From: Paragordius varius
Lineage: Eukaryota; Animalia; Nematomorpha
DNA: 64,000 bases
Direction: 5' to 3'
NCBI GenBank assembly: GCA_964247055.1
Contig: OZ176054.1
Location: forward strand, 8,370,001 to 8,434,000
This document shows, piece by piece, positions 30,951 to 43,455 of this stretch. Every line of letters starts with the position of its first letter. Within the stretch, counting starts at the first letter, position 1. A program made the translations under genes and the position numbers. The notes under the pieces are model-generated. The model did not search any database and was not told the DNA's origin. It worked only from the letters and a program-made list of their open reading frames with translations.

Positions 30951-33711
30951 TCAAAGAGCCGCATGTCGAACACCTTTGCTCCAAAACTTACAAAACGTAA
31001 AAAAATAATCAAAATAGGAGAACAATGTATGATAAATAAATTTTATCTAAAATAACTTTTAAAACAGTCGTCTATTTACAAGATTGGGCTCTGGGATATA
31101 AAACTACCTGATCGTCGCTGTCAAGTGAAAAGGTTATTAAGTCGTAAAGATTTTTTATACAGTTTCCATATGCCAAATAGTATGAAGAGGCTATGACAAA
31201 ATTTTGCTGAAAACTAAATATAACAATGTGCAATTTTTAATATATTAAGTTAATTTTAGTTATCAAATATTTTAAATTTTTATCGCTCCCCAGTAATTTG
31301 CGTATATTTTTTCAATTAGCCCAATTAGGAGAGCAAAAATATTTGAGCTTTCTAAGGAGCTCACTAAAGAATAATATTGTTAAATATATTTTTTGCTATT
31401 TATAAGTGGTTTCTAATATATTTTAGTCATCTTTTAGAAGCTCTCACCAGATAAAATATTGCGCAAATTTCGCCATTTTATAATATGGAGGAGTTACTAC
31501 AAAAGTAATAAAAACTCTCTTATCACTTGGACACAACACAATTTTAGTCCTTCGATTTAAATTGGGTAGTTGGATACTCCCGGCCTGTTTAAAATTAAAT
31601 AATTTAAAAATTATGGAAGGAATAGAAACCATGGGAAAATTTTGCACTTATATAAAATTAATAAACCGGAATATATATAAAACTTTTTTCAAAAATATAT
31701 ATTACTTATTTTAAGGTAATACCCAATAAAAATTTAGTCAACGTGACATGTGTGCAATGGCTAAATCGAAAAATAATACAAAGGCCACTTTTTCTATTTA
31801 TATCAATGTTAGATGTGATTTAAATATAAAATTAGATTTAATTTTACCCTTAAAGTTAAATGAGGACGATATTTTGCGAAAATTTTGTAAAATAAAAAAG
31901 TAGTTTGACATGGAACTTTTTTTTCAAACCATTTTTTTTGGATATTTTAGTGTATTTCTATAATTTTTATTAGGATAGAATCATAAATTTACTCCCTTCA
32001 GTCGTTTTCTTAAAATTTTATTTAATTTGGTCTGGGTATTTAGCCCAAAATGAATCAAAGTGTTATACCAAAGAGTCATAACCGAAAACATCAAGATAAT
32101 CCTGATAAATTTTCTTATCAGAATATATATATTTTGTCAGCATATTCGTTTTATGCCCCATTATATCCTGTACCAAAAATTTTTTATCACTATTTAACGC
32201 ATTTTCATATATTTATACCAAAAAAAATACATAATAAATTTAATAAATAATTCAGGGCTTTAAAACACTACCTTTTGGAGCCGGATACGACCCGTAGCGG
32301 TTGAGTACCACTGTAATAATTATCATTATATACTTAATTTTATATTATTTTGAAAAATAGTTATTATTGGGAATATTCATTTAGTTACTGATTATCATAA
32401 GTTTACATTTAAAGGTAAAATCACGCATGTCAAAATTAGACCCTTATGAATATTTTTCAACTATATACCAAAAAGAATTTTTACATGTTATAGAAACAGT
32501 TAGATTTGAATTATTTTAGTTTGATGGGTTAAAAGATATTGTTATTGAGAAAGAGTTGATAAAACCTCTAGATTTGATCCTCTCCATTAACACCTTAAAA
32601 CACCATAATGTGATTAAAATATTTCGCTTGGAAGATCACAATGTTAAAATATCTTCAGAAACGTATTCATTCAATTGAACTTTAGATGTATTTTCATAAT
32701 ATCACCCAGTAAAAAATCTTTTCAGCTTCTTCTCAACCATTTAAACCACATTTCTCTCTATGGTTCCAGCGCTTCATTAGGGCTAGTTTTCATACCAAAA
32801 TTTGTAATAATATTTTTAAATACGTTTTATTTATAGCGACACTTAGTAGTTAAAATATAATTCTAGATTTGAATTTTTTTAAGAAATTTTATCATAGCCA
32901 AACTGGGTTTTGTAAATAAAGATCAAATTTTATAAAACGGCTCTCATTATTTTAACACCTGAGGGCACCATATATTTTAAAAGCTAATGTTGGTAATATA
33001 TACTTGCGTCAGTAGGCACTTATTTCTTAAAATTAACTTGGTTTAATATTTAAAAAATAATATAAATTCGACTGTTCGGATATATAGTCATTATATATTT
33101 TTTTTAAAAAAGCGGATTTCGATTAAATACTGCGATTCAGAAATCATATAAGAATTATTAAATTTAATTATATAAGGTTGATACTGCAACCTATGACTTT
33201 ATATTATCTCTATCAATCGCAAAATATTGATAATTATATAAGCTTTACACTGGTACTTATCAAAAAATTTAAAGGGCTGCAGAAAAATTTTTTGCTTAAG
33301 GGCAATGCATCATTTAATATCGATAACTTCTGCTTTTTTAAATTAGTACATTAAATTTAATAAATAATTAAGGGTCAGAAAAAAGCACTTAAAGGAGGGG
33401 TGCGGTTTGAGTACTCATGTTTTAAATCATCCATAAACTATATATGATAACAGCCAATTTTATTTTAAAAAACGCATCGCATTATTACCAAATTATAATT
33501 GTACAATTTAGATCAAGAATATACTTGATATTTTTCATTATTACCCTACCCATCAATTATTAATTTGGCTATTTTTATTGTTTTTGTTTTCATATTTTGA
33601 TTAGTTATACACATCCGCTTGTATTTCAGTCTACTCGATGCTTTCATTTGAAACTAATTAAAAACTCTGTAAAAATTGTATATATACAAACTTTTAACAA
33701 CGGTGTTTACC

Positions 33712-33776
33712 CGTGCTCATTATGTGTGGCTGATGAGTCCACAATAAGGACGAAACGCGTCTCATACTATGACACG
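33712..33776 (+). ncRNA. Type I hammerhead ribozyme, minimal palindromic-stem-III (Penelope-like element/retrozyme) form
   Basis: CTGATGA 33730-33736; stem II GTCC/GGAC with loop ACAATAA; GAAA 33752-33755; palindromic stem III ACGCGT; GTC cleavage triplet (cut after C33761). Stem I is GTGTGG/TCATAC, extended by CGTG(C)TCAT/ATGACACG. Confidence 0.85.
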
Positions 33777-34583
33777 TAGTAAACACTGTCCCCTTTAAAT
33801 TTTCGTTTCATAAAGCCACCTAGTGCTTGATAGGAAGTACTATAACTTCTAATTGCAAAGGTAGGCTAAGAAAAATAATCTCCATAATATGTTTAATATT
33901 TACTATAAATGGCGTTTTCCGCTATAAAATTTGTGATTTTCTAGTTATATTTATATTGTTATAAAAAAATCGTTTTATGCCTAATGATGGGTATAAAAGA
34001 TAATATCGCACAAATTAGATATTTATTTTTACCAAACGAAGTAAAAAATGATCCTACGCACAAAAATATTGACCACCTATGTAAGCATTTAAATTATGAG
34101 AGAAACACAAAAAATTATCTACATCATAACCCTTTTCAAATAATAAAAATAAACCCTTTGTAAAAAATTAATTTTATTTTCACTTTGTGCCTCAGTATGA
34201 TTACTTAAAATATTCACAATCGCAAACTGTCTAACTGATAAAAGTTTACGCAACTCTTATAAACTAGATCTTTTTCGGAAAAATGCATTGCAATCAGGTA
34301 AAGGAATTGGTTTATTGTCAACGTTTTTCTAAACTAGTTTAATATGAAGGGGGGGATGGCTATCTATATAGAAATGATCTCAAACGTGGCCTTATAGGTG
34401 CATTTTTATGACCCTAAATTTTTATAAACTTTTTGAGTATATATCCGCAAATGTGGCAAACAGCTTATGAAATTTTTATCGGTTTTATATGGTGCACGGC
34501 CCTTGAGACAAGAGATATATTAGTGAGTTCACTGGTATATGGTATAAACATATTCCAATTTGCTATATTTATTTTATGGTTAG

Positions 34584-36163
34584 ACGTATGACTGTCAACT
34601 AAGCTTAGAAGCGTGTGGTGTTTGGGAATGTTTCCAACAAATTTTGCATTTTCCCTACTTATTACAACCGATTGATCGAGATTTATTTTGTATGGGTTTA
34701 CCAAACATAAGGACACACCCATCAAAGTTGAGTGTAGATAATAATTACGCCCTTATGTCTCAAATGTTAAATAGTATTCAAGATACTTTTGGACCATTTA
34801 AGGATATAAGTGTGCTAGGAACGGCCTCCAAAGTTATTTTTTAGTTTATGCAAAGTGCGAAAGTTTTATGGAAAATTAATTTCAATATTATAAAAATTTA
34901 AAAAATATTTTATCATTGGCAGCAATTATTTGATATCTGGCTAACCGGTAATGGTGGGAAAAGCTATTCCACAGACGTTTATAACGAAGAGAATACTGCG
35001 TCATCGGAGATTCCAAATTTGATAATTTTTGATAGAGGTATTTTTTTGATTAGACTTTTTTTTCGTTTAATATTTGTTTTATTTTATAAATTTAATATAA
35101 TTAACACTATACTGTTTATATACTCGCACAAAATTAACAATTAACGTTTCCATCATTTATTTAAATGGGCCATCTTTTCAAATTTTTTAAATTATATTTT
35201 AATTTATCAATAGGTGATAATCACTTTTTTCGTTATTTTTTTCAATATTACAATCAAAATTAGTTTTTATCTGCTGTATCCCATTATAATAATATTTTAA
35301 TGTTACTATTTCCCCGTATCCTCTAAATTAATTTTCTGGGGCATTAAAATAATTGTTATTAATTATAAATATAAACTTTTATTTGCATTAGAAATGGACA
35401 AAATAACCCCCTTTGTGACTTCATTGGATTACACGAATTTGATAAACCAGGTTTTTGGTATAAATGCAGGTTGTGTCGAAGTCGCCTCATCTGTACTGTC
35501 TCAAAGCATTACATCCAATTTTAAGACAGATATGAAATTGATTGAGGTAATAAATTTATACTTTTCAGTTTAGTTATTTTTAACACAATTTTATAACTTC
35601 ATCGCTAGTTTAAATTTTAATATTGCTTTTAACAAACCTATGTATATTAAAATTTATATTCGCACAATACAAATAGGTGGAAAAATTGCCAGCCAATAAC
35701 CTTAAAATCAAATTATCAAGCGATACGGTATTTTTTAATATTTAAGGATTTTGTTATAACTATTAATCTGCCAATTAACTAAAATATGTTAAGCGATACT
35801 TTTTAATTATGTTATTATATTCAAATTGCAGATATATCAAGATATAAAATCGACCCATTTTTCCGTAGTCTCCGAACATCTCAAAGAATTAAGCAAGAAT
35901 TTGCAATCACAATATGATGTATATCCATAATTTTTATTTTATTATCAAAAATATTGGATAATGTATAGAAATAAAAATGTTGCATTTTTTATACAATACA
36001 AATACTAGAATGCACAAAAAAGCATCGAAGGAATGAAATCATACGTTACTCAACATTTGAAGGATGTTAAAATACAACAAAAATCTCTAGCCTTACGTAA
36101 TTTATCTTTTTATTCACCATATTAAATTGAAAATTTAAGCGTATCCGACGGTTAATAACTAAT

Positions 36164-36199
<36 letters not shown>

Positions 36200-37834
36200 T
36201 GTAATTGCATTTACAATTATCTAAAACGTACATATGTAAGGTAAAGTAAGTTTTACTGTTTAAAGTAGGTTAACTTATTATAGTTTGCACGGTTGATGGT
36301 CGATATTATGATTGATGGTGTTTGTACTATTTATATACAAGATATCTCTTTTGATTCATATAGGAGTTGTATAGCTTTCCGGAGCTTTTCTAATTTTAAA
36401 AGTATGGGGTCTAATCTCTAGCGCTATCTCAGCTTTTTAGGGTTGTTCTATCGCGTTATCGCTGTTTTAGTTATTTGATTCCTTATAGTAATAATATTGC
36501 GGTTAGTAACACCAATATAGGGGGTGACTAGAGTATTATCATCATTTTATTCGTAAATCCCGTTTCGATTCCTACATGTCGATATTTTTAATATCTTCTG
36601 GCATCGGTTCTTAAAATGGTTTCTATTTGGCACTATTTTTATTATTTAAATATTAAAATGCTAAACGAGTCTCACACAATATGTGAACGTCAGACCGAAA
36701 ATTGCCAAGTGTCACGTGAAATCCTGCTTTAGGCAAATAGAAATTATTTTGCATCTAATTGTGATAGCTGATTAAATATGGCTATATTTTGAATTCCAAA
36801 TTGTGGCTTCCACCTTAAATCAAATCAAATTTATTAGTAAAATATAATAGTTATATGGGGGATGAATTGGTACTAAGGTGATTAAATCATTATCAAAGCT
36901 GTTGATCTTCAGAGTTGAAGGTAGCTGATTTGAGATAAGTTTTTATTGCTGTTTTCCAATTGTTTCTATTTTCCGCTTCTTCTAATTTTAGTTTGGCCTC
37001 AGTAAGATCATCATATATAGTACGAATCCAGCTTTTGAAGGGTCTGCCAGGCTTTGAGCTAGATTTGGAGTAGGACATCATTATATGTATATAATTATCT
37101 GGTGGTCTACGATGGATGTGACCAGCCCCTCTCAGTCTTTTAGCCCTTAGAAAGCGATCAAAAGCAGTGATATTAAGGATTTTATACGGATCAAATTGAT
37201 TATTAAAGTTAGAGAGTTTAGGATTATGTACTAAAAGGATCGTTTTGAGTATTTTGGATTCTGTTTTTTGGAATTTACCAAGGTTTGACTTTGTCATGGG
37301 CCAACATTCCGTGCCGTAGGTTAGTGCAGGACGGATAATGGTAGAATATAACTGCGATTTCGTTTAAAGTTTGATGTATTTATTATTAATTATGTGTTTT
37401 AGTCCATGGTATTTTTTCCATGCTTCAGATGATCTGTGTTTGAGGCCATCACTGATACCTACTTTGGAGGATATTTCGTCACCCAAATATTTAAAGTGAG
37501 TAACAGTTTCGTAATTGTAGTTATTAGAGATTGCAATTTGGCTAGTATGGGTAGGTTGTCGATGCAACTTGAGCAAGTAAAGGTTCAACCCTAAGTAATT
37601 TTAGGTTGGACCATTTTTTATGTATCCAGAAATTACATTTAGTACACAATATAGAATTTGCCTTTACAGCTAGGCTGCAAATTCTACATGGCTACTTAAT
37701 GGGCTTCATTATATTATCGTGCATTAGTTTTGTTTTGCTGGGATTGATTTTGAGGCCATGACTTTCCAAGCAATTTTTCCATTTGTATCAATTATTACGA
37801 TAATACATTCGCAGGAGCTTACCCTGGGAACTGC

Positions 37835-37878
<44 letters not shown>

Positions 37879-40800
37879 TTTTTACGAAATTTTTTAAATA
37901 AAAATATTGCATTAAGTAATTTCATTGCCTAACTCTCTTAAATTTCAAACTAAAAATAAATAAAAGTTTTTTTAAACAGATACCTAACCTATATATTATA
38001 AAAAACTAACGTTATAATACGGCCATAATAATATTTGCCAATTAACATAAAGGGTAAGTAGTTTCCATATTTACCCACGTTTCTAGTATATTTATTTGTC
38101 ATATTTATAGATGGTTTAATGAAATTAAGACTATTATTTTTACTTTTTTTTGGCGGAGATATATAAATACTCCGCAATATTCTTAATCACAAAAGTATTA
38201 ACATTTCCTTTATTAATACGTTTTGTATAGCATGAGTAAATGGCAGCGAGACATATTATTCTTTTTTTCCAAAACTTATTATCATCATTCATTTGTATGG
38301 GGATTTGCCTTTGAATGACGGTAAACCTGTTTTTTCCAGTCTTTTCTTGATCTGGCTAATTATAGATTTAAATTAAGCGATTCTAGGTCTCTTGTTATTA
38401 GTTAATTTTATATCGCTCGTCTTTAAACTCAGCGGCACAAACAACAACATTCTTAAAGTATTGTTCATTTCTTTTTGTGCCTATAGGTAACAAATATAAG
38501 CTACCTTAAACAATGCAAAAAAACCTTTTTTGTCTTAAAATCCCTTTTCCAAAAACATATGGGAACTTAACTACCTCATGAACTATGTAACAATCTCTTA
38601 AATAACCCAACGGGTTCTTGCTAATATTCTAGGAGCCCACATTATATATTTTTAAACAACCCTAACACAAATTTTGCAATTTTGGTTAAAATTATATGTT
38701 CATTCTCTTTTTTCATATTAGTTCATTATAATTTAACTTACTTTTACGCTATATGTGGATTTAATTTGTAATAATAAATTAAATATTATATGATCTTTTA
38801 ATTTGGATATAATGTGAATCAAATTTGATAAAAATTTAATATTTTTAATTATACAAATTTTAGCAATTTATAAAATACAATAATATTTTTTTATTTTTTG
38901 TATAGATATTGGGTTGTGTGAAAACATAATTAAAATGAAAGATGACTTGGTCATTGACTTTCCCGCTCAACTTGACATTGAACAAAGTAATGATTATATA
39001 TATATATATATATATATGAATCATATTTCCGAATATAATATATACTTAATTTGATTACAAAATAATATTTTATTCATAATTATGTTTTTTTGACGGAAAT
39101 GCGCTTTCTTCTATTTTAATAAATTTTAAAAAAATCCTGTTAGCGCTTTTTTAGCGTTTTATCCATTATTATCTATTGTTTACGATATGGCTTTATTAAT
39201 ATAAACATTATCAATTAAAATTAATCATATACCATATTTTAAAGAAGTGAATATCCGAGTTTAGAATATCCTATGTTTAGGTATTGCAGAAACTTAAATG
39301 AGCCTTTTGGAATCGGTTAAATTTAGATTACGCGCTATTTTTTTATTTGTTATATTCCGTTACACGTTAATTTAATGGCAACGGTCAGTTGTTAAAAATA
39401 TAAAAAATTTAAGTATATTTGATTAACAATATTATTATTATTATTCTTATAATTTAAAACTCAGAGAATCTTTCCACATTTAATAACATCAGTGTGCGAG
39501 CTAATAAAAATAATAAAACAATTTACTAACAATAAAACATAATTTATAAGGTATTTTACGGCAAGGGGATTTGAAAACGATAGTGACAGCACTTCAAGAA
39601 CTCATGTATAAGGAGGTATTTGTTTTATGCAAAAATTCTTAAATATTATTTTTGTTGCGTAAATTTCGTTTTTTTAATTATATAATATTTTAAATTATAG
39701 TGTCCACCATACACAATTTTGGCATTGCTATGCCTGATTTGTCAAATCTATGGGGTAGATGCAAAAACATTGGACAGCTTAATTCAAGATTTTTACCACG
39801 TAAATAAAAATTTTATTCTGCAATTGGTTGTTAAAATCATTTTATTATGTATACAATATAAAAAATTTGAGTTGATACTTATTACTTGTTGTGTATGCAA
39901 TCATTATAAAAGTAATTATATTGATTGATATATATCTAATTTGTGTAAAATATTTAACAAATATCATTTATAATTTCAAACATATTAGAGAAGAAAAAGT
40001 ATTACAGAACAAAATTTTATATTTTACAGATTTTTAACTTAATAAATAACGGTTAGATGCATGGATTTGAGTATATTCCCGTTGTTGAAGAACTTAAATC
40101 TATCAACTTAATACAACACCGGAAATTGACAACAGGAGGGTCTAATTTAAGCAATTTTTTGCACGAATCGCCCTTAAGTAATTTGACAGGCGTTACACAC
40201 ACAACAAACCAATGGTATACAACTGTTACCAAAAAAATGTTTGAAATGGTATGTATTTTATTAATTAAAGCGACTTCTAATTGGTCAGATTTTAATTTTT
40301 TTATGGATATTATGCTTTTTTCTAGGAAGTCCCAAGTGAAACTGTTGATTTCCGAAAACCTAATGATATAACATATGTCTACAATGGCGTTTACATTCCG
40401 ATTTCGATTGGATTAATTAAACAGGTATTTGAATTTCTTATAAAGTAACTTAATTGTGTAAACTTTTTTGATTACAGTATGCACATGTTGACCAATTGTT
40501 AATACAGTAGATAGTATAAAATAATTTTTTTTGTCCGTAATTAAATAAATGACCAACAAAGTCCTATAGCCATCTCCCTGTGGTGTTTCCTAGGCCAGTT
40601 TATAATGATTTGTAAAATCATTATTTGCACCTCTTTTACGTAAAAAATCGCCTTAGAATATCACGAAGTATAAATATACTGAATATGAATTACTTCGTAG
40701 CACGAAAACTCCAAATTCGGAGTCCTTCCCTTTATAATATAAATTAAATAAACAAAGATAGAAAAAAATGGTCAATTTCAACCATTTGTTGTTTTTTTAC

Positions 40801-43455
40801 TCATATACTATATTGCCAATTGGTCATTAATGTGAATTGGCCAACATAAATGTGCATACTGTGTAAATCCTTAAAAATCTCTGGTTTATAGCGGGTTTTA
40901 TATAATTAAGATCACTTATAAATATAATATAATGGGTTTAATTAATAAAATATTTTTCATTGATTTTATTAAATTTTTGATGCATATATTATATTGCTGT
41001 CAGTCATAATTAACTGGATGTTTACTAATACTTTATAATATGAAATACTTCTAATGGTAAAAATTCAAATTTTTAAGACAAAATATATTCAATGATTAAT
41101 GATTTTTCCGATATTTGATTTTTCTAGATAATTTAAGACTACAACCGTGAAATATATATAGTGTGGTATATCTCTATTCCTTATTTTGCAACCCAAAACA
41201 ATAGTTTATAATAAATAATAAGCAGTTTTAAACCGTCAAACATTGATATAAACGAAAATCAAACTGTTTATGAAAATTAAATTTTACAATGAAAATTCTA
41301 AATGATATGTAAAACCTTTTGTGCTTAGCACTCAACATAACGACATAACTATTACATTTACAATTCAAATTCACCTTTAAACAATACAAATTCAAATTTA
41401 CTGTTAAACAATTCAAATTCACCCTCATATATGTTTTTTAAGATTAAAAAATACCTAAATTTTAAAAAATAAAATTTTGTTTTAAATTAAAATGATACTG
41501 AAAAAATATTAAACTATGCCATAAAGATATATTTTATATTAATAATGAGTTATATTAGTTCGAAAACACATAATTTATTTTTAGGGTGAATTGGTATATT
41601 TGACTTTATATTATAGAGTTGTTTGAATAGTATCTGAAAAAACAATGTATTAGAATTTTATAAAATTAATATTTTTTAATACCAAAGTGATCATTAAATT
41701 TCATTGATAATTTTTTCCAAAATGGTTCTTATGATTTATTTACCATATTTATAGTTTATTACTAATCAATACTTGAATTTTGATGAATTGCTTAAAGTTT
41801 TACCCGAAAACACCTTTCATTCACACCAAAATTCCAAGATTAAAACAGGTTTGAATATACAAATGTAAATTATTTTACAAAATATCGTTTATTCTTATTA
41901 TAGTTAATATTTAACCCTTAAATATTAAGAAATTTTTGACTAATATGAAATTATACATTAGTAAACATTTAATATGATGATAAAATTTGGCTATACAATA
42001 TCGTATGGTGTTACCTTCCAATGATTAACAGTATGACCGGTTAAAATTTTTTGCAAAAATATTTACTCCGTAAATTTTTTTTACAAAATGTAAAAAATAG
42101 CCTTAATTTTTACATTACAATATAATACATAATTTATACAAAAAATTATAAATCAATCCTACAATCCAAAATTGCATTAATATACAAAAACGATATTTTT
42201 TGTATCCATTAATCTACATTAGATCACTCCTTATAATGAGTTATCCTTATAAGGAGTGTCTAATAACTAATTTTATGCTGATATCATACATTTTTCCAAT
42301 TCAACAACGTCTTAATAACATAAAGCCGTTAATCATTCAAAATGAGATTTTTTACATTATTAAATGAAATTTGGTTTAATTCATTTTTATAAAAAAAATT
42401 TAAATAATGATGCGTATAATGAGCCATATTTTTTCCCTTATTCGGGATTATGGATATCTACTGGCTGTTAAATTAGACTTTGAAAAATGACCCATTATCC
42501 AAATACAATTTCTCAAATTATTGCAAATGTGGGCGTGATATAAAAGGATATGTATTTAGCTATTTCCGAGAAATATTTATAAAACACTCACTATTGAGTA
42601 CTTTGATCAGAAGAATAATAATAACATGATACATATACCATTTACAATTCAATTTGACCCTTAAACAATTCAAATTCACCCTCGAACAATTCAAATTCAC
42701 CCTCAAATAAAATATATGTTTTTTAAGATTAAAAATTAACTATATATTATATATTTTTCAAAAATAAAAATTTTTCTTTAAATTAAAATAATACTGAAAA
42801 AATAATAAACTATACCTAAACATATGTTTCTATTAATAATGAGTTATATTAGTTCGAAAACTCATATTATTTTAAGGGTGGATTTGAATTGTTCAAGGTG
42901 GATTTGAATTGTTTGAGGGTGAATTTGAATTGTTCAAGGGTGAATTTGAATTGTTCAAGGGTGAATTTGAATTGTTCAAGGGTGAATTTGAACTGTAAAT
43001 GGTATATATTATGGGGTCGATAGGATAAAACAATATTTATTTCCTTGTCTGAACCAATAAATTCCACTAAAATTTTTACTTATTTTAATGAAAATTATTA
43101 TTTTACAAAAAATATTTCACGGCATTATAAAGTCTTATTTAAAAATATAGATTTAGATGTATGCTAAATAGTATTTATTTTCGCAAAAGTCGTCGAAATT
43201 GACCATAAGCAACACAAACTCCTACAAAATATAACATTTAGTATTTTATTTTTGCATGATTTATTTAGAATCTAATGATACACATATGATTTTATTTTAC
43301 GGTGGATGCACTTATGGAGAAATTGCTACCACACGGTTCCTAGCCAAAAAATTAAGTATAAAATTTTAACCATAATTATTTTAGACAAAACCATTTATAT
43401 TGTAACAACTAGCATATTCAATGGACCATGCTATGTAAAAAATCAAACTAATTAA
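34584..43455 (+). CDS. VPS33B: Sec1/Munc18-family vacuolar sorting protein VPS33 (closer to VPS33B); 5' exons not resolved
   Basis: Hand-assembled GT-AG exons that stay in frame: 34584-34832, 34923-35037, 35392-35546, 35677-35727, 35832-35918, 36009-36096, 38906-38986, 39551-39615, 39701-39799, 40057-40248, 40326-40424, 41755-41848, 43269-43355, 43385-43455. Motifs LQPIDRDLF, IIFDREMDKITP, PNDITYVYNGVYIPIS, FYGGCTYGEI, IVTTSIFNG. N-terminal exons probably lie in 33900-34530. Confidence 0.8.
36167..36196. repeat. (AT)n microsatellite
   Basis: Direct reading. Confidence 0.95.
36893..37588 (-). mobile_element. 5'-truncated RTE-like LINE remnant inside a VPS33 intron
   Basis: One frame with a single stop at 37364-37366: FKYLGDEI...SQLYSTIIRPALTYGTECWPMTK...RLRGAGHIHR...GRPFKSW...NRNNWK. 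These motifs are typical of the post-RT C-terminus of RTE/BovB-like elements. Confidence 0.8.
37838..37875. repeat. (TA)n microsatellite
   Basis: Direct reading. Confidence 0.95.
40475..40861. mobile_element. Tc1/mariner(pogo)-type MITE in a VPS33 intron
   Basis: TA|CAGTATGCACAT ... ATGTGCATACTG|TG, with inner inverted GTTGACCAATT/AATTGGCCAAC. Confidence 0.6.
41353..41597. mobile_element. Internally deleted copy of the 21-bp-repeat foldback MITE
   Basis: Left arm TACATTTACAATTCAAATTCACC plus repeats; right arm reduced to AGGGTGAATTGGTATA; central spacer similar to 42636-43004. Confidence 0.6.
42636..43004. mobile_element. TA-flanked foldback MITE with TIRs built of 21-bp tandem repeats
   Basis: TA|TACCATTTACA ... 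TGTAAATGGTA|TA. Arms are arrays of AACAATTCAAATTCACCCTTG and its reverse complement (about 3 units left, about 6 right). Confidence 0.8.

Follow-up and report, generated by a model that had tools for sequence, protein, structure and literature searches.

An intronic hammerhead motif at the Paragordius varius VPS33 locus and the small ORF-less repeat family to which it belongs

The type I hammerheads of animal retrozymes and amphibian satellites combine a 6-bp helix I and a 4-bp helix II with a helix III of only one or two pairs and a palindromic loop, and canonical metazoan ribozymes with such a 1- to 2-bp helix III and palindromic loop cleave inefficiently as monomers but well in dimeric form (PMC4209133, PMC7229834). 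Insertions of Penelope-like elements (PLEs) show strong 5' truncation, partial tandems that form pLTRs, an adjacent inverted and 5'-truncated copy, and a tail of 30 to 40 bp (PMC8557442). It has further been argued that non-LTR retrozymes derive from PLEs and are non-autonomous (bioRxiv 10.64898/2026.07.22.740005).

Here we describe a hammerhead motif of this kind in the nematomorph Paragordius varius. The window, i.e., the whole stretch of DNA that was analyzed, comprises 64,000 nucleotides (GenBank assembly GCA_964247055.1, contig OZ176054.1, positions 8,370,001 to 8,434,000 of the forward strand). In all probability the motif is the ribozyme of a small, ORF-less, non-autonomous retroelement (referred to here as family A) that was probably copied by PLE machinery, and the copy in the window would be a neutral passenger of a VPS33 intron. 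In the literature searched, no paper combining Nematomorpha with hammerhead, retrozyme or Penelope was found, and the nematomorph lineage may thus represent a previously unrecorded host of a known class of element.

The hammerhead motif and its fold

The motif lies at the apex of a long hairpin (positions are those of the window unless a genomic locus is named; family B is the second hammerhead family of the genome, described below).

33700-33790, plus strand: interrupted hairpin of ~29 bp, an extension of helix I into a rod, topped by the hammerhead (from folding; arms read in the sequence)
33724-33767, plus strand: type I hammerhead motif (RF00163 match; core same in 33 genomic copies; covariation in comparison with family B)

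All three elements that define a type I hammerhead core (CUGANGA, GAAA, and an NUH cleavage triplet) are present in the letters, as CUGAUGA at 33730-33736, GAAA at 33752-33755, and GUC at 33759-33761, with cleavage predicted 3' of C33761. Helix II has 4 bp (GUCC/GGAC, 33737-33740 with 33748-33751) and a 7-nt loop, while helix I has 6 bp (33724-33729 with 33762-33767: G-C, U-A, G-U, U-A, G-C, G-U) and forms the open end; these two helices flank the core, and every pair in them is standard. Helix III consists of the self-complementary ACGCGU at 33755-33760, that is, one A-U pair and the palindromic CGCG. Beyond helix I, the rod continues for eight more pairs (33712-33715 and 33717-33720 with 33769-33776), interrupted by a bulged C and a small internal loop, and then for a further 11 pairs (33700-33710 with 33779-33789). 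The first-pass annotation of this DNA had described the complete core, the 4-bp helix II, the 6-bp helix I with its eight extra pairs, and the ACGCGU palindrome, all of which read as described, the rod being 11 pairs longer than was noticed at the time.

The 91-nt hairpin (33700-33790) has an MFE of -34.1 kcal/mol (z = -3.86, 200 shuffles), and a generic hammerhead core pattern matched the window a single time and none of 100 shuffled windows. In an E-value search of 501 nt, the motif matched the Rfam model Hammerhead_1 (RF00163) over model positions 1-45 of 45 with 30.3 bits (E = 1.4e-5). The gathering score of this model is 34 bits, and a scan of the window at the gathering threshold gave no match. 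Even the best-scoring family A copy reached only 33.2 bits, also below 34, the missing bits being attributable to a helix III loop of zero length and a loop 2 of 7 nt. The Rfam comparison that had been proposed as a check thus returned the expected family, albeit under its gathering score; the earlier assignment to the short-helix-III type I form of the retrozyme or Penelope kind was borne out. At the level of sequence, we regard it as confirmed that the hammerhead motif is real and its core intact.

The VPS33 gene around the motif

Searching for VPS33 homology exon by exon, we obtained a gene model that begins well before the motif.

32427-32498, plus strand: VPS33 coding exon 1, from the start ATG at 32427 (frames and GT..AG borders; splice sites inferred)
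32520-32662, plus strand: VPS33 coding exon 2 (same basis)
32686-32823, plus strand: VPS33 coding exon 3 (same basis)
32824-34603, plus strand: VPS33 intron 3, 1,780 nt, 28% GC; donor AC/GT at 32824, acceptor AG/C at 34603, phase kept (borders inferred from frame and homology)
34604-43366, plus strand: later VPS33 exons, for example 34604-34841, 35394-35570, 35793-35927 and 43235-43366 (PDB and Pfam matches)

The start codon was read from the plus-strand translation. In PDB, exon 2 (32520-32660) matched Vps33 chains only, with Chaetomium Vps33 (4jc8) aligned over residues 31-72 (E = 0.0078) and human VPS33A over residues 32-70, and it also matched Pfam Sec1 at profile positions 1-37 (E = 0.0069). 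Two downstream pieces likewise hit only Vps33 chains in PDB, 35394-35570 at residues 243-276 and 43235-43366 at residues 605-628, and downstream pieces matched Sec1 positions 260-288 and 528-553. Taken singly, these downstream matches are weak (E values between 0.002 and 1.7), no Vps33 match was obtained with exon 4 by itself (34599-34841), and a whole-genome Pfam Sec1 scan did not flag the gene in the window. The model is nevertheless convincing, since the weak matches hit Vps33 exclusively and do so collinearly.

On this model, the element that carries the motif lies within intron 3 on the sense strand, 1.3 kb downstream of the VPS33 start codon; 854 nt separate its start from the donor, and 653 nt its end from the acceptor. 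The motif had initially been placed upstream of VPS33, a position that is incompatible with the start ATG at 32427 and the three exons that precede it. The related proposal that it could define the 5' end of the VPS33 RNA fails as well, since the motif is preceded by three coding exons. The finding is mainly one of annotation: it corrects the VPS33 gene model and identifies the ribozyme as a repeat copy rather than a gene-specific device.

Several other features of the locus were observed. Introns 1 and 2 appear to be frame-preserving micro-introns with GT..AG borders, of 21 nt (32499-32519) and 23 nt (32663-32685). Inside a later VPS33 intron, the minus strand of 36893-37588 contains ORFs of 134 and 74 amino acids (e.g., ...GRPFKSWIRTIYDDL...NRNNWK...), which gave no significant Pfam match and which we take to resemble the tail at the C-terminus of ORF2 proteins from non-LTR retrotransposons. 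In the downstream part of the locus, 41228-41428 and 42560-43067 are minisatellite-like arrays with a 21-bp period that translate as "RVNLNC" and "NSNSPLN" heptads on both strands.

Two hammerhead repeat families in the genome

The motif is part of an ORF-less repeat of ~480 bp, with, as judged by similarity, ~100 copies in the genome. BLAST with a 111-bp query (33690-33800) returned at least 44 scored matches of 88 to 97% identity in the 110.6-Mb assembly, and at least 72 family A cores were found genome-wide within 2 mismatches over 25 specified bases, 33 of them exact; the reversed-pattern control had no match in the genome. In a metagenome scan, the exact core of family A was absent (0 matches). 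The genome-wide search that had been proposed as a check did find related copies, and the description of the motif as solo holds for the window, where there is neither a Penelope ORF nor a second copy, though not for the genome with its 72 or more related cores. Many of the inexact cores carry substitutions at catalytic positions, and individual copies thus decay neutrally.

For comparison, 30 family A loci were fetched and the longest copy (L002, reverse strand) was used as a ruler. The family occupies positions 133-613 of this ruler, or ~480 bp. In full-length copies, positions 133-192 are repeated at 549-606 with 90% identity, so that a unit of 416 bp and a terminal redundancy of 60 bp make up such a copy. 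The 5' ends of the copies are scattered between ruler positions 133 and 521, while the 3' ends fall into two clusters ~50 bp apart, at ~555-565 and ~605-613. Among first-look genome candidates, the 3' part (151) was commoner than the ribozyme part (113) and the 5' part (61), as expected for 5' truncation. None of the 30 loci showed an ORF-bearing extension. The boundaries of the family are asymmetric around the hairpin, extending ~250 bp upstream and ~190 bp downstream. One copy (in L009) is ~1.3 units long and, together with the 60-bp redundancy, points to family A templates longer than one unit.

All 12 close pairs among the 72 family A cores are arranged head to head (minus then plus), 100 to 580 bp apart, and no direct tandem or tail-to-tail pair was detected among these cores. 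The paired arms are each 5' truncated at a different point and abut within 0 to 40 bp.

Five matches of ~84% identity to one 130-bp stretch from within the 5' region of family A were also located on contig 7 (G000:C7:2806150, 2856375, 2914215, 2964189 and 4786837). Four of these are ~50 to 58 kb apart, which suggests a segmentally duplicated block containing an element fragment.

The copy in the window is a fragment of the family A element.

33678-33950, plus strand: 5'-truncated family A copy, ~273 bp, 34% GC, corresponding to about positions 207-475 of the ~480-bp full-length element

Its homology to 25 or more other genomic copies sets in abruptly at 33678 and stops between 33893 and 33970. 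The start corresponds to ruler position 339, and other copies reach ~200 bp further upstream. From the family majority it differs at 10 of 241 sites (4.1%), and one of these differences merely exchanges a helix I G-C pair for G-U. The copy carries one ribozyme only, has no inverted partner, and shows no clear target-site duplication (6-mers only, in AT-rich flanks). Earlier, the motif had been interpreted as a solo pLTR or retrozyme remnant. It is indeed a lone retroelement remnant, although it represents a 5'-truncated copy of the ORF-less ~480-bp family and no solo pLTR from an autonomous element.

That the genome contains a single hammerhead family was ruled out by a plain pattern scan, which found 174 exact hammerhead cores in the genome and none in the control and thereby revealed a second family, family B. 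The RF00163 scan of the genome covered 73 scored candidates out of 8,881, and among those only family A-type matches were seen. About three-quarters of the listed pattern matches belong to family B, which occurs at ~130 places genome-wide and is more abundant than family A. Its core is CTGATGAGTGCTAACAAGCACGAAACTAGTC, with ACUAGU as helix III. The family forms direct tandem arrays with a period of 444 to 446 bp as well as inverted pairs, and, like family A, it has its ribozyme at the tip of a long hairpin. Two example loci are given here.

G000:C4:11695915-11697058 (L053): family B locus
G000:C1:4310819-4311295 (L054): family B locus

No sequence shared by families A and B was detected outside the core. 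The genome thus carries two sequence-unrelated, ORF-less hammerhead families with Penelope-type insertion footprints. When the ribozymes of both were aligned, 13 of 13 helix pairs were standard in every sequence, and 5 of the 13 differed between the families by double-sided changes (one each in helices II and III, the other three in helix I); in slid-register controls of the same alignment, pairing fell to 15 to 54%. This covariation, which compares two independent lineages, is supportive of the fold rather than statistical proof of it. The helix III palindrome is itself preserved through a double change, from ACGCGU in family A to ACUAGU in family B. Self-complementarity of helix III in both families is what the double-hammerhead model expects, and its retention would lend that model modest additional support.

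About 150 to 240 nt downstream of the family B ribozyme, a piece of 85 bp within the unit matches with 80 to 88% identity repeats around PLE ORFs that have RT and GIY-YIG. These repeats are numerous and alternate in orientation (3250-7030 of L042 and 2890-5930 of L046, within G000:C6:298000-317000). Since they surround a pair of Penelope-like ORFs on contig 6, a link of family B to an autonomous element is possible.

Mode of copying, effect on VPS33, and known relatives

The 5' truncation, partial tandem, and inverted arms of family A match the published anatomy of PLE insertions and thus indicate a PLE insertion pattern. The genome does encode PLE-type proteins, including a 544-amino-acid ORF that combines RVT_1 (E = 4e-9) with a GIY-YIG domain C-terminal to it, and it contains 20 GIY-YIG matches, several of which are in inverted pairs. 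Family A gave no BLAST match to 18 PLE-containing loci, and in four ~19-kb PLE regions examined in depth neither family A sequence nor a hammerhead was detected. No autonomous PLE relative of family A was detected at these loci, and we infer the partner from insertion anatomy alone.

In the explanation that we consider most probable, a PLE reverse transcriptase and GIY-YIG endonuclease would be the likely machinery that inserts family A at new sites. Target-primed reverse transcription would often stop early and leave 5'-truncated copies, and insertion would often leave a second, inverted 5'-truncated arm positioned head to head with the first. The two classes of family A 3' ends may correspond to the 30- to 40-bp tail of PLEs. 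The family A ribozyme presumably processes multimeric transcripts of the element and not host RNA. On this account the window copy would be a dead-end product, cut off at 33678 with the first ~200 bp of the unit missing and with no partner arm; having landed in sense orientation in VPS33 intron 3, it would presumably be transcribed in the pre-mRNA and removed with the intron.

Alternatively, family A could be a retrozyme in the strict sense, in which a pair of ribozymes cuts unit-length circular RNAs out of tandems for reverse transcription, and the window copy would be a partial cDNA. The 416-bp unit with its low GC content, lack of an ORF, and canonical type I hammerhead would fit metazoan non-LTR retrozymes (PMC7229834), templates longer than one unit are indicated by the 60-bp redundancy and the ~1.3-unit copy, and the sister family B forms direct tandem arrays of 444 to 446 bp. 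Against this, no two-ribozyme direct tandem exists among the 72 family A cores, and the ends of the copies miss the cleavage site, the 5' ends being scattered with only one at position 424. We therefore consider the strict retrozyme unlikely for family A, although it is compatible with copying by PLE machinery and differs from it only in the form of the template.

That the hammerhead is a working cis ribozyme of VPS33, which would cut the pre-mRNA in the intron and thereby tune or terminate expression or make an alternative 5' end, is very unlikely; this reading transfers the earlier regulatory idea to the actual position of the motif. Its core is intact and on the sense strand of VPS33, and roles in mRNA biogenesis have been proposed for conserved intronic hammerheads of amniotes, in work that PMC7229834 cites; however, the motif is one of ~100 near-identical dispersed copies, many of them with broken cores, and nothing about it is specific to the locus. 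With three coding exons upstream, cleavage would give no functional 5' end. Moreover, poor cleavage is expected of a lone ribozyme with a 1-bp helix III (PMC4209133), and co-transcriptional splicing tolerates hammerhead cleavage within introns (Dye et al. 2006, as reported via PMC2995048).

The same considerations apply to the copy within the framework of the PLE-copied element. The window hammerhead is probably transcribed within the VPS33 intron, and as a lone ribozyme in its transcript with a 1-bp helix III it is expected to cleave slowly or not at all, since in this class efficient cutting depends on the pairing of two ribozymes into a double hammerhead. By nearest-neighbor energies that ignore tertiary contacts, the hammerhead-competent fold of the monomer is 4.8 kcal/mol above the MFE, and the homodimer is marginally favored (-71.8 versus 2 x -34.1 kcal/mol). 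We expect no effect on VPS33, or a negligible one, because the monomer has a 1-bp helix III and an unfavored fold, cleavage in an intron is tolerated, and locus-specific features are lacking. It is highly improbable that the window hammerhead is active in vivo, e.g., paired in trans with abundant transcripts of the family and cutting a fraction of the VPS33 pre-mRNA. If this were true, double hammerheads formed in trans would couple a housekeeping trafficking gene, VPS33, to how strongly a family of ribozyme-bearing retroelements is expressed.

A match by chance, or a hairpin without a ribozyme such as the terminal inverted repeat of a MITE, might be read from the Rfam score below the gathering threshold and from the position of the motif within a long inverted repeat, yet this reading was rejected on family anatomy and covariation and has next to no chance of being correct, given the absence of the pattern from all shuffled windows, the 174 genomic matches compared with none in the control, the invariant core and covariation in all three helices of two unrelated families, and the asymmetric boundaries and 5' truncation, which are unlike those of a MITE.

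Among known systems, PLEs with pLTR hammerheads (Cervera and de la Pena 2014, PMC4209133; Craig et al. 2021, PMC8557442) resemble family A in their 5' truncation, pseudo-LTR-like repeat, and inverted copy, as well as in the ribozyme on the sense strand with its palindromic helix III. Unlike PLEs, family A has no RT/GIY-YIG ORF, measures only ~480 bp at full length, and shows no similarity to the PLE ORF loci examined. In addition, metazoan pLTRs typically carry a min-HHR with a long helix II and no helix III, whereas the family A ribozyme has the canonical 6/4-bp form. Like the window motif, conserved intronic hammerheads occupy introns of protein-coding genes in sense orientation; they are, however, single-copy, deeply conserved, and equipped with a stable helix III, whereas the motif described here belongs to a recent repeat copy (4% diverged) and has a 1-bp helix III. 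Schistosoma Sm-alpha (Ferbeyre et al. 1998, cited in PMC4209133), as far as its description there allows comparison, is like family A a short (a few hundred bp), dispersed, non-coding retroposon of an invertebrate parasite with one canonical type I hammerhead per copy, although its sequence is unrelated and its copies, according to the same description, number thousands rather than the ~100 seen here.

A close likeness is also seen to metazoan non-LTR retrozymes and their type I hammerhead repeats in amphibians, schistosomes, and cnidarians (Cervera and de la Pena 2020, PMC7229834). Unlike these, family A has one ribozyme per copy and no two-ribozyme direct tandems among 72 cores, its copies are mostly 5' truncated, with many head-to-head inverted pairs, and the window copy is a single fragment; the head-to-tail tandems typical of retrozymes are seen in family B and not in family A. 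The 6/4/1-bp helices and palindromic tetraloop are the same, however, and in both cases many dispersed copies, each a few hundred bp long, are ORF-less and AT-rich, with no LTR, PBS, or PPT. The ~416-bp unit of family A and the 34% GC of the window copy agree with the 150 to 450 bp, lack of an ORF, and low GC content by which retrozymes are defined. The element in the window is thus an ordinary example of an already known kind.
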